Assembly (NCBI GenBank): GCA_037447605.1
Contig: CM074820.1
Span: forward strand, 1,612,001-1,676,000
Direction of reading: 5' to 3'
DNA: 64,000 nt
Origin: Zygnema circumcarinatum SAG 698-1b
Taxonomy: Eukaryota; Plantae; Zygnematophyceae
The notes beneath the pieces are model-generated. The model saw only the letters and a program-made list of their open reading frames with translations. It had not been told where the DNA came from and did no database searches. Below, piece by piece: positions 472 to 54,291 of the stretch (its first letter is position 1; every line of letters starts with the position of its first letter). A program made the translations under genes and the position numbers.

Positions 472-2461
472 ATGCGGGGGCGGGCTTTTTCCCGGAAGCT
501 TCGTCCGTACCTCGCGCGGATCCTCCTCGGGCAGGCCGTCCTGCTGCTCCTTTTAGGGTTTGCATACGTGGCGTACCGCCTGAGCGGCCGGGGCCGCCAC
601 GTGGCGTCCACGGAGGAGAGCCGCGTGGCGTGGGAGAAGGCGGAGGCCAATGCCGTGCGGCTGCGCGACGATCCGAGGGACGAGCGCGGGTGGATCGTCT
701 CGCCGCTGCTGCAGGCGGAGCGGCACGGCCTCGCGGGTGGGGAGGGGTTCAGGAATTAGGGTTCAGGGTTTAGGGGTTGGGGGTTGGGGTTTAGGGTTTA
801 GATTTTAGGGTTAGGCTTTAGGGTTTAGGGTTTAGGGGTGAAAGGCTAGGGCTTAGGGGCTAGGGGTTAGGGGGTTAAGTGTTAGGGGCTGAAGGGTGAG
901 GGTTTAGGGTTTATGGGTGAAAGGTTAGGGGTTAGGGGCTAGGGGTTAGGGGGTTAAGTGTTAGGGGGTTAAGGGTTAGGGTTTAGGGTTTAGGGCTAAA
1001 AGTGATGGCTCAGGGTTTGGGACTGTTCGGGATTGGGTTGAGGGTTCTGGGATTGTTCAGATTGTAGAGATAGGTTTCAGGGCTTAGGGCTAGAATTCAG
1101 GGTTTAGGGTTCGGGAAGTTGTTTGGGCTTGACATTGGGGGCTGATGGTTGAGGGTATGGCCTTTTTGAGCTTGGGGTTGAGAATAGAGGGTTTTGCGGT
1201 ACAACGTTTGATGTTGGGGTTGTAAATTTGGGGTTTGAGTAGTAAGGTTAGGGATTGTTTAGGGTTACAATTAGGATAAGAGTTAGAGTTAAAGTGAGTA
1301 TAATGTTCTGGTTACAACTGATTATGTTCGGGTGCTGATGCTTATGTCATGCAGAGCGAGCATTGCTTCCTACCTATGCGTACTTTGCATGACTAAAACC
1401 CTGAGCTCCCGTGCTGCCACGTGGCAGGGGCGCAATCCTGCTTGGATGTGAGCGTGGGGACTGTCCTCCCGTTTCACACGCGCGCCAACCATCGCCATCA
1501 CAGCAAGAACGAGTCCTTCATTGTGTGGGGAGCTAAAGCATTGTGGCGCGTATGTCCCCCCCTCTCCCTGTATCTCTTTCGAACTCCCTCCCCACTCCCC
1601 CTCCCCCTCCCTCCCTCCATCCCTCCCCTTCCCCTCCCCCTATCCCTCCCTCTCTCCCTCTCTCCTTCCCTCCCCCTTCCCTCCCGTTTCCACTACCCCT
1701 CCCTCTCTCCTTCCCGCCCCCTTACCTTCCCCTTCCCCTACCCCTTTTGCTCTCTTTCTCTCATTCCCTCCCCCTTCCCCTCCCCCTAACCCTCCCTCCC
1801 TCTCTCCTTCCCCACTCAGCTCCCCAACGCCCTTCCAATCTCACTCCCTAAACAAATCAAGCCCATGCCAAGAGCACCTATACTACACCACTCGTGTATG
1901 TCTGGGATGGCTATGGCCTGACATGGAGGCATGGGATGTACTCGGCGCGCATGGGCATGGGCATGGGCATGGGCATGGGCATGGGCATGGGTCATGGGCA
2001 TGGGCATGGGCATGGGCATGGGCATGGGCATGGGCATGGGCATGGGCATGGGTCATGGGCATGGGCATGGGCATGGGCATGGGTCATGGGCATGGGCATG
2101 GGCATGGGCATGGGTCATGGGCATGGGCATGGGCATGGGCATGGGCATGGGCATGGGCATGGGCATGGGCATGGGCATGGGCATGGGCATGGGCATGGGC
2201 ATGGGCATGGGCATGGGCATGGGTCATGGGCATGGCCGTGGGCATGGGTCATGGCAGCTCGAGAACGCCGCCCTCCCCGACGGCTTTGCCGAGGTCCAGA
2301 TCGAGCGGCGCCACGTGGCCATCTTGACGGCCCCGCGCGGGCGCGCCCACGCTTTGCGGAACATCGACGGCCGCGCGACGCTGAACCTTGTGGTGTGCAC
2401 CGACGCGGAGTGGGACGAGCGCCGCCCGGACACCACCACGCACATTTGGAAGGACATTTGA
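472..2461 (+). CDS. Membrane-anchored RmlC-like cupin (FdtA/QdtA/WxcM sugar-isomerase-like), plant-conserved; join(472..736,1428..1549,2258..2461), ~196 aa
   Basis: Three exons join in frame via GT-AG introns: N-terminal TM (ILLGQAVLLLLLGFAYVAY), then DERGWIVSP..GAQSCLDVSVGTVLPFHTRANHRHHSKNESFIVWGAK..LENAALPDGFAEVQI..AHALRNID..THIWKDI*. The N-H-R-H / E / H pattern is a cupin metal-binding signature. ORF track mislabels exon 1 (451..759) as minus. Confidence 0.8.
757..1110 (+). repeat. Degenerate telomere-like (TTTAGGG/TTAGGG)n tract in intron 1 of the cupin gene
   Basis: Dozens of tttaggg/ttaggg/ctaggg units, fading into G/T-rich sequence to ~1300. Confidence 0.9.
1948..2254 (+). repeat. (CATGGG)n hexamer microsatellite ending at the intron 2 acceptor
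   Basis: ~50 gcatgg units with occasional gtcatgg variants, ending catggcag|CTCGAG. Confidence 0.95.
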
Positions 2462-51300: not shown

Positions 51301-54291
51301 TCCCTGCTCTCCCCCTCCTATTCCTTTCTCCCCTCCCCTCTCCCTCTCATACTCTGTCCCCATTCTCTCTTTCTTCCCCCCTCCTCTCTATTCTCTCTCC
51401 CTCTCTCTTTTTCTCTCTCTCTTTCTCCCTCTCCCTCCCTCTCCCTTTCTCTCCCTTCCCCCATCTCCCTGTCTCCTCCCCATTCTCTTCCTCGTCCTTC
51501 CCTTTCTGTCCCCCCTCTCTCTCCCCCTTCTCTCTCCCCATCTGCCTCTCTCTCCCCCCACTCTTCCTTTCTCTCGCTCTCCCTCCCTCCCTCCCTCCCT
51601 CTCTCCGTATCTCTCCCTCTCTCTCTCCCTCTCCCTCGCTCCCTCTCTCTCCCCCTCCCTCTCCCTCCCCCAGCGCCTACCGCATGGGGTCCACCCGCTT
51701 CGCCGCCATTGGTCTGCAGAACAGGACGTGCGACCGCCACGTGGCGGGGCGGCCCATGGAACGGCCCGCCACATCGACCCGTCAGTTCCGTTACTCCGTT
51801 GAACTGAACGGCAGCGATTCCGTCTGCCAATGGCGGGACGCTGTGGGGCCCACAATTTTCGGACGGCTCGAATTTCTGTACTCGTGGGAACACCACGACC
51901 AGGAGGTGGGGCTCGCTCGCCTCTCTCCCTCCCTCTCTCTCTCTCTCTCTCTCTAGCTCTTTCTCTCTCGTCTCTCTTTCTCTCACTCCCTCCCTTTCTC
52001 TTGCTCTCTCTCTACCTCCCTCTCCCTCCTTGTCTCTCTACCTCTCCCTCCCTCTCCCTCCCTCCCTCCCTCTCTCCCTCCCTCTCTCCCTCTCTCCCTC
52101 CCTCCCTCTCTCCCTCCCTCCCTCTCTCCGTATCTCTCCCTCTCTCTATCTCTCCCTCTCTTTATCTCTCCCTCTCTTTATCTCTCCCCCTCTCTCTCTC
52201 CCTCCCTCCCTCTCTCTATCTCTCCCTCCCTCACCCTCCTTGCCTCTCTACCTCTCCCTCCCCTCTCTCCCTCCCTCACCCTCCTTGTCTCTCTACCTCT
52301 CCCTCCCCTCTCTCCCTCCCTCACCCTCCTTGCCTCTCTACCTCTCCCTCCCCTCTCTCCCTTAATCCGTTAAACGGAAACTGTGCAGATGGAAACCCTA
52401 ACAGTTCAGTGCATATTGGAGGCCCCCACAAGCACGTGCGGCGGAATTTTGGAGGGAAATTTTCAAGGAGAAAATGTTGTCCTATTCCAAGAATGGCCCG
52501 GAGAGGTACATCTGCAAATTTTCAAATCTAAAAGAATTTTTTTTTTTGTTTTGTTCAATAGTAAAAGGCACATTGAAAGGAAGGAAAATGGACTCATTCT
52601 TTTTGTTGCCTTTCTCCATTACTTCCCTTTCATTTCCTTTTTTTATTTCCTTTTTCTTCCCCTTTTTTGGGGCAGGTTAAGCATCCCCAACATCACTTTT
52701 TCCCCTCCAACATCACTTTTTGCTCGCCGACTTTACATACCGATCTGAGGCGGGAGGCGGTAATAGAGTGGATTTGGTACCATGACGTCATCACACGTGT
52801 GAACAAGTACATATTGTACGACTCAGGCGTGTGGAATGCTGAGCTGGCAGTCCCCCTAGCGCGACACGTGGCGACCGGAGTCATAGAGCTGACCGACTTT
52901 TCCGGGCAGGAAAAATATCCCACTTGGTTTCATTCTCAGGTGGTTCCCGGAAACCTTCTGAAGCCCAATAAAAGCTCAATAAAAATTTACAGAACTGACC
53001 CCTTTTTTCCACCCCTTTCTAACCCCATTTTTTCATTTTTTTTTTTCTTCTTTTCTGGTTTCTTCTCTTAAACCAGATGCTCGCCCTCCAAGACTGCATT
53101 TACAGAACGAGATTTTCCTCTAAGTGGATTTTTGTGGCGGATTTTGACGAATATTTAGAACCGGTACCCCCCTTCTCCCTGCCCTCCCTTTTGGCCAAAT
53201 ACGAGCACAAGGCGTGGCTCTCCTTCGGCGGAGTTTGGTGGGACATCAATTTGTGCGAACCCGAAAAAAAATCGGAAAAAAATTTGGACCGAAAAACCAG
53301 GTTTGCGATCGAAAACCTGGTTTTCCGCGCGGACGGGTTTTTTTGCGCGCGGGCAGCCCCGCCGGGCGGGCGGACGTGCACGAGGGGGAGGGCGGACTGG
53401 CCGGGCAGCGTCTGCAAAAAACTTTTTGGGGAACTTTGCGACGCGCATTTCGGGCGGCGAAAGTTTTTTGTCAATCCTCGGAAGGTGGTGGTAGCCCCTG
53501 ACACCCTGAACCCTAAACCCTAAAGCCTCAACCCTAACGGCTAACCTTAAACCTTGAAGCTTAAACCCTAAACCCTGACGCCTACCCACTAAACCCTAAC
53601 CCCGCAACCCGAAACCCTAATTCTCTAAACCTTAACGCCTACCCCCTAACCCCGAAACCCTAAACCCTAACACCTCCCCCCTAAACCCTAACCCCTCAAC
53701 CCTTAGCTCTAAATCCTAACAACTCTAACCCCATAACCCCTGAACCCTAGCCCCGCAACCCTAAACCCTAAACTCTAAACCCTAACGCCTACCCCCTACA
53801 CCGTAACCCCTCAACAGTAACCGCTAAATCCTAACAACCCTAACCCCCTAACCCCTAAACCCTAACCCCAAAACCCTAAACCCTAACGCCTACCTCCTAT
53901 ACCCTAACCCCGAAACCCTAAACTCTAAACGCTAACCCCATCCCCCTAAACCCAAAGCCCTAAATCCTAAACCCTAAACTTTAAACCCCACCCCCTCCCC
54001 CCTAAACCCTACCCCCCGAAGCTGTCGCAGGTGGACCTTGCGGGCATCCACGAGGTGTTGGAGCCGCGCGGCAACGGCGTCTCCCTGAACGCGCGCACTC
54101 AGTTCCGTTTGAACCACTTCCGCTGGCTCGCCTCGCAGCGCGCCGTTCCGTTTTTCTGCAACGGAACGGAGGACGGAGGACATGGAGAGGAGGGGGAGGG
54201 CCCGTGGGTGCGCGACTTGGGCCTCGCGGAGAAGGGGCGGAGGGCGAGGGAGGCGAAGAGCCAATGGGAGAGGGAGGGGCAGGATTGGTGA
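48351..54291 (+). CDS. Glycosyltransferase family 92 (DUF23), galactan beta-1,4-galactosyltransferase GALS-like, type II membrane protein
   Basis: N-terminal MAMRRRRAGLLLVTMASAVMAWQV; AYRMGSTRFAAIGL; ITFCSPTLHTDLRREAVIEWIWYHD..YILYDSG; SQ|MLALQDCIYRTRFSSKWIFVADFDEYL (DxD); GRRKFFVNPRK|VDLAGIHEV..FRLNHFR. Two or more exons are duplicated by the artefact at 48880..52030. Confidence 0.85.
48880..52030. other. Near-identical ~1.45-1.7-kb direct duplication (offset 1699) across N gap 50566..50575; probable assembly artefact
   Basis: Identical ORFs 49274..50257 and 50973..51956; the copies diverge only in the CT-rich tract next to the gap. Confidence 0.85.
53510..54010 (-). repeat. Telomere-like (AAACCCT)n tract in the last GT92 intron
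   Basis: Dense aaaccct/aacccct units. Confidence 0.9.

Follow-up and report, generated by a model that had tools for sequence, protein, structure and literature searches.

The DNA analyzed here is a 64-kb stretch of the genome of the alga Zygnema circumcarinatum SAG 698-1b (the window), in which the 10-letter plant G-box, GCCACGTGGC, occurs at about 300 times the frequency expected by chance, coding exons included. The copies lie in and around TNPO3, a papain-type protease gene, a small DUF2256-like gene and elsewhere in the window. Pfam searches with 38 open reading frames around the sites named only TNPO3, a PRP5 helicase, a Surp protein and a weak DUF2256 match, with all homology and domain searches made exon by exon. 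The homologue search with exon 1 of TNPO3 gave two distant matches, and none was found with the small DUF2256-like ORF. The window is interrupted by eleven runs of N, five of which were absent from the program's list: 25788-25797, 45966-45975, 50566-50575, 61793-61802 and 63069-63078. The nearest exact site to any of these gaps is 149 bp away, and spacing statistics are approximate where gaps are crossed.

The exact copy at 29303..29312 lies 186 bp upstream of the TNPO3 start codon, in the promoter or 5'UTR. Within the coding sequence of exon 1, in the IBN_N domain, the copy at 29024..29033 is read in the ATW-L frame, and only the W and the L are conserved in orthologues. The same exon carries two one-mismatch copies at 28823..28856 (sense-strand GCCACGTGTC and GCCACGTGGA), which join 29024 and 29303 in a cluster at the gene's 5' end. 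The copy at 25946..25955 is intronic and precedes the acceptor of exon 25911-25816 by about 35 nt, a position backed by the transcript of a related alga, which skips it. Further coding exons hold the copy at 25513..25522, in the ATW-Q frame, with W and Q conserved in distant orthologues but A and T not, and the one at 23839..23848, in the PRG frame of the large exon 24348-23476 (- strand), where the surrounding stretch aligns to a gap in the orthologue.

For the protease gene, the 5'-most RNA contig end (36973) has a copy some 35 bp upstream, at 36938..36947. The RNA-supported first coding exon (+ strand) contains 37874..37883, in the PRG frame with the rare Arg codon CGT, and 37990..37999, in the HVA frame. 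The copy at 42419..42428 is in the transcribed last exon, 3' of the stop at 42279 and hence in the 3'UTR; some contigs diverge at 42433. The DUF2256-like gene (- strand, ATG at about 4364) is an inferred model with the weak Pfam match. Its putative first coding exon has copies at 4226..4235 (VATW) and, 28 nt away, at 4264..4273 (RHVA), and a one-mismatch copy at 4422 is placed about 60 bp upstream of the ATG.

The remaining exact copies are spread over the rest of the window. The one at 596..605 is clustered with near-copies at 98, 330 and 459; another is found at 1416..1425, and that at 2310..2319 lies directly 3' of a (GCATGG)n microsatellite. The copy at 12800..12809 is followed by GACACGTGGC at 12850 and 13263, and 31359..31368 is surrounded by ORFs without a Pfam match. 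Short open stretches surround 44391..44400, which is probably non-coding, 47327..47336, with TGACGTGGC close by at 47443, and 47516..47525. The copies at 50037..50046 and 51736..51745 belong to the two arms of a 1.7-kb duplication (96.5% identical) on either side of the 10-N gap 50566-50575 and are not independent of each other.

The window thus holds 21 exact copies, 20 of them independent, where 100 dinucleotide shuffles gave 0.02 on average and never more than one. An earlier note, made from the sequence alone, had listed some 20 perfect copies and estimated about 25 near-variants; every position it gave was recovered, 51736 had been missed, and 31 one-mismatch copies were counted. An order-3 Markov model predicts 0.26 occurrences against 40 two-strand counts, and in low-complexity-masked DNA GCCACGTGGC is the most over-represented dispersed word under that model. 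Exact copies come to about one per 2-3 kb, and sites with at most one mismatch to about one per kb of complex sequence. The flanks of 20 copies are unique, with no shared extension past a pyrimidine/purine preference at the adjoining positions. Within the window, the word is accordingly a short dispersed palindrome in orders-of-magnitude excess.

The excess extends into coding sequence, where it goes beyond both codon usage and protein sequence. The verified CDS, 7.8 kb in all, has five exact copies against 0.29 under amino-acid-preserving codon resampling (none of 1000 resamples reached five), and all five peptides compatible with the motif are encoded by it. The in-frame copies in unrelated proteins that the note had pointed out are borne out by ATW at 29024 and 25513, PRG at 23839 and 37874, and HVA at 37990, so that all three frames are used. 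The codons CCA-CGT-GGC are chosen even with CGT accounting for just 7% of Arg codons. A conserved W and the C-starting codon after it are the base of the motif at 29024 and 25513, where the two variable residues that precede them are now A and T. The constraint is at the nucleotide level, and codon choice in these exons is locked to the word. The excess survived the dinucleotide, Markov and codon controls, and the note's suggestion of a process acting on the word itself agrees with an enrichment for which none of composition, dinucleotides, codon usage or protein sequence accounts.

With respect to context, the mapped exact copies include seven in coding exons (two of these in the inferred gene model), one in a 3'UTR and one in an intron, and 9 of the 21 (8 independent) have no assigned context. 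Sites occur upstream of genes (29303, 36938), in UTR (42419), in CDS and in introns (25946, 41432), a range that does not fit the exon marking once considered for this motif. The only sites in upstream sequence are 29303, 36938 and 4422. An exon preference judged by open frames is uninformative, as open stretches of at least 100 codons cover 71% of complex positions. At short range the sites form homotypic clusters, with nine gaps of at most 50 bp where about two are expected. Three genes have such clusters at their 5' ends: TNPO3 (-186, +93, +270 and +294), the DUF2256-like gene (-60, +90 and +130, on the inferred model) and the protease gene (-35 and +87 relative to the RNA 5' end). At the kb scale, after masking and removal of duplicates, no significant departure from uniformity was detected, and site density in 2-kb bins showed no correlation with CpG o/e (rho 0.03). 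The region 53-64 kb appears to be a motif-free, CpG-poor domain, having one site with at most one mismatch where about 7.6 would be expected; this post hoc observation is at most suggestive.

The one-mismatch copies are far from a random sample of neighboring words. GACACGTGGC and its reverse complement GCCACGTGTC, the ACGTGTC half-site form, account for 12 of the 31 against 0.06 expected, and TCCACGTGGC for three. The hybrid C/G box TGACGTGGC is present six times (0.18 expected) and TGACGTCA nine times (0.54 expected). The CpG-transition variants GCCATGTGGC and GCCACATGGC have no copy in the window; the dominant changes are the transversions C2>A and G9>T, and wobble-compatible transitions are rare. 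Together with the lack of correlation with CpG o/e, this leaves the methylation link that had been raised earlier without support in the window. The ratio of exact to one-mismatch copies is 21:31, compared with 1:30 at neutrality. Of 40 flanks, 31 have a pyrimidine at position -1, so that the palindrome reaches 12 bp. Half-site frequencies predict 16.5 full palindromes, close to the 21 seen, which fits a dimer with two equivalent half-sites.

The identification of the word as the plant G-box was correct: the ACGT core sits within CACGTG with flanks of the GCCACGTGGC or ACGTGKC type, half-sites behave as modules, and hybrid ACGT boxes such as TGACGTGGC are in use. Work on peach promoters assigned the de novo motifs GCCACGTGGC and GACACGTGTC to the bZIP matrices ACGTGKC, TGACGTGGC and ACGTGGCa (PMC8133646). 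Binders of (C)ACGTG include bZIP, bHLH and BES1 proteins and one trihelix factor, and plant transcription factor motifs have stayed conserved over 450 million years or more (PMC12142463). The variants in the window are those of the plant bZIP repertoire (ACGTGKC half-sites, hybrid TGACGTGGC, pyrimidine at -1) and not products of CpG decay. This spectrum is better explained by a bZIP-like dimeric reader than by an anonymous repair bias, and an E-box-only bHLH reader is disfavored because it would not select TGACGTGGC.

In a relative (Logan run SRR8128902) the exact motif is present at the TNPO3 site orthologous to 25513 (L003:509-518), in a 16-nt identical block; the note had proposed such a look at orthologous sites, and this is one codon position. 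Third-position identity at conserved four-fold residues between the two TNPO3 genes is 0.33, with synonymous sites saturated, and we estimate the chance of retaining this site at about 0.03. The motif is kept at one of the two exonic exact sites open to comparison, a very small sample, and the relative has its own TGACGTGGC at a non-orthologous site. Four more distant algae had no exact copy in 50.6 kb. The literature search found no published description of such G-box iteration.

We favor, tentatively and with a probability of about 0.45, the reading that the copies are high-affinity sites of a candidate bZIP-type dimer, kept by DNA-level selection throughout gene space. The reader would be a dimeric ACGT-core factor of the plant bZIP type (G-box/ABRE class: GBF, ABF/ABI5 or HY5-like), and selection on the DNA itself would keep its sites in this algal lineage, upstream of genes, in UTRs and introns and, through point substitution at tolerant codons, in coding exons. 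We infer that the selected property is occupancy, which may be regulatory or chromatin-organizing. This reading is suggested by the perfect G-box that matches bZIP matrices, by a variant spectrum that corresponds to bZIP preference and not to decay, by the nucleotide-level constraint in verified CDS, by the homotypic clusters (including those at the 5' ends of three genes), by the one orthologous site compared, which is exact despite the low third-position identity, and by the resemblance of other over-represented dispersed words to plant cis-elements. Several observations stand against it. Most mapped sites are in transcribed DNA, as far as 5 kb from the start of the gene, which is not where plant G-boxes act. 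The near-uniformity at the kb scale fits a genome-wide process equally well as gene-specific regulation, the 5'-end clustering comes from three genes, one of them with an inferred model only, and the orthologous conservation comes from a single compared site. The 21:31 ratio is also sharper than is typical of transcription factor site populations, and resembles HIP1 or uptake sequences.

That sharpness also counts in favor of a rival, a non-transcriptional, eukaryotic HIP1-like drive. Through a repair-coupled methyltransferase, biased mismatch correction or biased gene conversion, such a drive would create or preserve the palindrome wherever protein sequence tolerates it, and the likeness to the G-box would be coincidental or secondary. 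Near-uniform placement across upstream, UTR, CDS and intron, the use of three reading frames with variable residues rewritten to suit the word, and an apparent restriction to the lineage, judged from 50.6 kb of four other algae, agree with such a force, and the relative's orthologous motif beside its own non-orthologous TGACGTGGC suggests turnover under a shared one. HIP1 is reported to have these same properties (PMC4390886, PMC13756078). Against this, the enriched variants (ACGTGTC half-sites and TGACGTGGC) are tolerated by bZIP proteins and are not expected of an enzyme that recognizes the whole palindrome, density is unrelated to CpG o/e, a word of 10-12 bp cannot act as a conversion template, and no candidate enzyme is encoded in the window. 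We also know of no such system in any eukaryote, and we regard drive as unlikely, though a serious rival. A broader proposal, possible if doubtful, is that the alga has a eukaryotic counterpart of HIP1: a lineage-specific, sequence-specific system, either genome-wide selection for occupancy by an architectural protein that binds the G-box or a drive linked to repair or conversion, would rewrite tolerant positions of gene space, codons included, into the 12-bp palindrome, and the proteins would be partly shaped by a DNA word.

An RNA-level element is quite improbable. The palindrome reads GCCACGUGGC in every transcript in either gene orientation and could bind a protein or pair with other copies, nearby pairs giving 10-bp stems; most mapped copies are transcribed, nine pairs are within 50 nt, and codon choice is locked to the word. 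But 29303 and 36938 are upstream of or at transcript starts, 25946 and 41432 are intronic, the dominant transversions would break RNA pairing, and half-sites and hybrid boxes are in excess by themselves. Mobile-element remnants or ends (MITE termini, excision footprints or transposase-binding repeats) are very improbable. Low-GC metagenome contigs do carry TGCCACGTGGCA in tandem and inverted subterminal-like arrays, so that the word can be part of repeat elements elsewhere, but in the window the flanks are unique throughout, the copies in conserved codons align to orthologues without insertion, and a 10-bp insertion would shift the reading frame. A MITE or transposon terminal repeat, recognizable by shared sequence past the core, target-site duplications and insertion relative to orthologues, was rejected, and decayed transposon copies, which the note had named as a possible source, do not account for the excess. 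It is hardly conceivable that the excess arises from composition, from codon or dicodon usage or from assembly duplication: the gap-flanking duplication contributes one of the 21 copies, the shuffles, the Markov model and the codon resampling refute composition and codon usage, and the flanks of 20 copies are unique.

Among known systems, plant G-box/ABRE elements (bZIP: GBF, ABF/AREB/ABI5, HY5) share the identical 10-mer, the palindromic form expected for a dimer, and clusters, some adjoining gene starts; their tolerated variants ACGTGKC and TGACGTGGC (PMC8133646) are also the same. The putative algal sites differ in density, in the dominance of the exact consensus and in being mostly transcribed or coding, whereas the plant zone is the promoter at -50 to -300. 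Cyanobacterial HIP1 (GCGATCGC) is likewise a dispersed short palindrome in huge excess with unique flanks, found within genes in all frames beyond codon usage; it is conserved between relatives, as the algal word may be (PMC4390886, PMC13756078). HIP1 is another word, and the algal case is a eukaryotic nuclear genome with introns, has lower density, coincides with a known transcription factor site and has no known cognate orphan methyltransferases; strict HIP1 membership is ruled out by the eukaryotic host. Bacterial DNA uptake sequences (Neisseria DUS, Pasteurellaceae USS) are similar as 9-12-bp, high-copy words with a sharp consensus, coding DNA included, maintained by molecular drive as the algal word may be, but are non-palindromic, competence-dependent and prokaryotic. 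Exonic transcription factor sites of animals and plants ('duons') let coding sequence double as protein-binding site, as would be so in the alga, and constrain codons; they involve many factors of weak effect each, whereas in the alga one word of 10-12 bp leaves synonymous positions no freedom.

To our knowledge, such density has so far been described only for bacterial iterated palindromes, and the excess of GCCACGTGGC, codon-locked exons included, means that a known transcription factor site is used, or driven, at that density. The G-box is among the best-studied plant cis-elements, and here it is hyper-iterated in a close algal relative of land plants. Either G-box factors may have an unrecognized genome-wide role (chromatin organization, intragenic regulation) near the origin of land-plant signaling, or this may be the first eukaryotic example of iterated-palindrome drive. 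Thousands of natural sites should exist, so that the phenomenon is easily tested. Protein-evolution tests should allow for constraint acting on the DNA where codon triplets spell ATW, PRG and HVA.

A metagenome scan for paired copies gave at least 120 loci, most with the seed pair only and none resembling the alga, and a viral scan gave eight contigs with one pair each. In motif-enrichment analyses and promoter scans of this genome the word will dominate. Other dispersed over-represented words of the window look like plant cis-elements too, for example the telo-box AAACCCTAA and words containing AACGG.

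The coordinates that the earlier note had given for exact copies of GCCACGTGGC, the 10-nt G-box palindrome of plants, all proved correct, and one copy that it had overlooked, at 51736, was added. The window contains 21 exact copies, against 0.02 expected from dinucleotide-preserving shuffles. Because 50037 and 51736 share one 1.7-kb duplication (two copies, 96.5% identical, straddling the 10-N gap at 50566-50575), the number of independent sites is 20. In addition, 31 one-mismatch copies are present, and 64 sites retain ACGT with no more than two mismatches, where about 9 would be expected by chance (our own estimate). 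About one quarter of the window is low-complexity DNA, namely GA-rich tracts, telomere-like arrays and microsatellites; in the other 47 kb, GCCACGTGGC is the top dispersed word, with 40 two-strand counts against 0.26 expected from an order-3 Markov model. No exact site comes closer than 149 bp to any of the 11 runs of N in the window, among them 25788-25797, 45966-45975, 50566-50575, 61793-61802 and 63069-63078.

The transportin-3 (TNPO3) gene, whose coding exons span 29117 to 21658 on the - strand, was mapped by homology and by a transcript (contig L003) of a related alga (Logan run SRR8128902). Exact copies 29024, 25513 and 23839 lie in its coding exons, 25946 lies in an intron, and 29303 precedes the ATG by 186 bp. 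The N gap at 24975-24984 costs no TNPO3 coding sequence, since the relative's transcript joins the exon ending at 25025 directly to the exon starting at 24348; the gap at 25788-25797 sits between two aligned exons. The papain-type protease gene, which is spliced and extends from near 36973 to past 42499 on the + strand, was defined by RNA-derived contigs from four studies and has GT..AG introns of 122-163 bp. These contigs place exact copies 37874 and 37990 in its first coding exon and 42419 in its last exon, past the stop codon; 36938 precedes the 5'-most RNA contig end by about 35 bp, and a one-mismatch copy, 41432, is intronic. A small, predicted DUF2256-like gene has exact copies 4226 and 4264 in what is putatively its first exon. 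The best protein matches are with Closterium and land plants, in line with the genome being that of a streptophyte alga. Copies tend to lie close together (nine gaps of ≤50 bp against about 2 expected); three genes have such a cluster at the 5' end, and further copies lie kilobases inside gene bodies; at 2-4 kb resolution, departure from a uniform distribution is not significant.

The amino-acid-preserving codon null proposed in the earlier note leaves the excess in coding exons standing. When synonymous codons were resampled exon by exon in 7.8 kb of verified CDS, with the proteins kept, 0.29 exact copies were expected and 5 are observed (at least 5 in 0 of 1000 resamples); for copies with at most one mismatch the figures are 1.6 and 10. 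All five peptide contexts in this CDS that are able to carry GCCACGTGGC do carry it. Copies in the PRG frame encode Arg by CGT, which makes up just 7% of Arg codons. At 29024 and 25513 the word is built on a conserved Trp and the next, C-starting codon, and the two residues before the Trp, which vary among orthologues, are Ala-Thr in the window. It follows that the DNA word shapes codon choice and, where tolerated, the protein. Exact copy 23839 and a copy at 23983 are both in non-conserved protein stretches.

Between the relative and the window, amino-acid identity is 89% for the PRP5 helicase and 56% for TNPO3, and synonymous third-position identity is 0.33. The earlier note had suggested looking for the motif at orthologous sites, and one of the two exonic exact sites open to comparison is conserved: in the relative, the codon position of 25513 holds an exact copy, within a 16-nt identical block. 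The relative also carries CACGTG at the position orthologous to 25832, and has its own TGACGTGGC at a place lacking one in the window. The PRP5 gene or transcript has no copy in either alga. No exact copy occurs in 50.6 kb of Closterium and three other algae encoding TNPO3 or PRP5 homologues, and near-copies there are at chance level. The excess is therefore lineage-specific yet older than one species. In the literature searched, we found no paper that describes GCCACGTGGC, or CACGTG, as iterated in an alga, and it goes unmentioned in the streptophyte algal genome papers that were checked.

Most frequent among the variants is GACACGTGGC / GCCACGTGTC, which occurs 12 times where 0.06 copies are expected. 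Among ACGTGNN half-sites the GGC form, with 82 copies, stands well above GAC (24), GTC (22) and the others, and full palindromes show only a slight surplus over the number predicted from independent half-sites (21 against 16.5). The hybrid box TGACGTGGC is enriched (6 against 0.18), as is TGACGTCA (9 against 0.54, five of them inside 172 bp at 14.8 kb), and 31 of 40 flanks have a pyrimidine at position -1. Plant bZIP factors are credited with the repertoire ACGTGKC, TGACGTGGC and ACGTGGCa (PMC8133646; PMC12142463), and the variant spectrum in the window is, by its sequences, that same repertoire. Neither CpG decay nor RNA pairing nor a pure E-box reader would give such a spectrum. The link to CpG or methylation raised earlier finds no support in the window: copy density does not track CpG o/e in the window, and CpG-transition products of GCCACGTGGC are absent from it.

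The sequence data establish that a strong force acts at the DNA level, and its specificity is that expected of a dimeric reader of the bZIP type. We tentatively favor, at a probability of about 0.45, selection for binding of a bZIP-type factor across gene space, because the variants and hybrid boxes fit that family, the copies cluster, partly at gene starts, and one orthologous site is conserved. A predicted dimeric factor of this type would bind copies throughout gene space, and selection would keep them. A drive resembling that of the cyanobacterial highly iterated palindrome HIP1, and not working through a transcription factor, would account for a consensus this sharp, for the near-uniform scatter and for copies in all reading frames; it leaves the half-site behavior unexplained, and we regard it as less likely, though a serious rival.

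A role of the word in RNA is improbable, since pairing between RNAs would not produce the variants seen. Remnants of transposable elements are highly improbable, as the ±30-nt flanks of exact copies are mutually unrelated, the 50037/51736 pair excepted, and an artefact we consider extremely improbable.

Several other features of the window were recorded. Five CRE/C-box palindromes TGACGTCA at 14805-14977, spaced 28-48 bp apart, make up a tight group of bZIP-type sites. The region 56000-64000, around the PRP5/DDX46-type helicase, is the sole clearly CpG-depleted part (o/e 0.65-0.77); G-box copies are absent from it and ACGT tetramers nearly so. Three tandem duplications straddle 10-N gaps: 5713-9452 (1866 bp, 99.9% identity, gap 7579-7588), 48877-52272 (1.7 kb, 96.5%, gap 50566-50575) and 60525-63068 (1268 bp, 99.8%, gap 61793-61802), the last repeating part of the PRP5 gene. 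Probably these are overlaps or haplotypes left uncollapsed where scaffolds were joined.

A second dispersed word, CAGTTCCGTT (AACGGAACTG), has 11 copies with unique flanks against 0.12 expected (11392, 16259, 28692, 31273, 38542, 38560, 38623, 47901, 50084/51783 and 54100). AACGGAACTG is the sense-strand reading in coding exons of both mapped genes, with one copy in TNPO3 exon 1 and three in protease exon 2. Plant telomere repeats form interstitial arrays (820-1002, 3817-4109, 21361-21649, 22849-23298, 53503-54011 and dispersed) that adjoin gene ends, one array beginning 9 bp past the TNPO3 stop codon; outside the arrays there are about 25 telo-box words AAACCCTAA that stand alone. The small ORF at 4092-4364 (- strand) has a DUF2256-like zinc-ribbon motif (CSECG...NW) and no homologue by word search; past a donor-like site, GTACGG, it reaches a telomere-like array, so it is probably exon 1 of a gene that is spliced. 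Eight JGI metagenome contigs of about 30% GC (L094, L104, L113, L011, L020, L036, L080 and L084) carry TGCCACGTGGCA in short tandem and inverted arrays, for example with a 19-bp unit, gccacgtggcattgtcagt. These arrays resemble subterminal repeats of a low-GC eukaryote's mobile element and have no relation to the alga.
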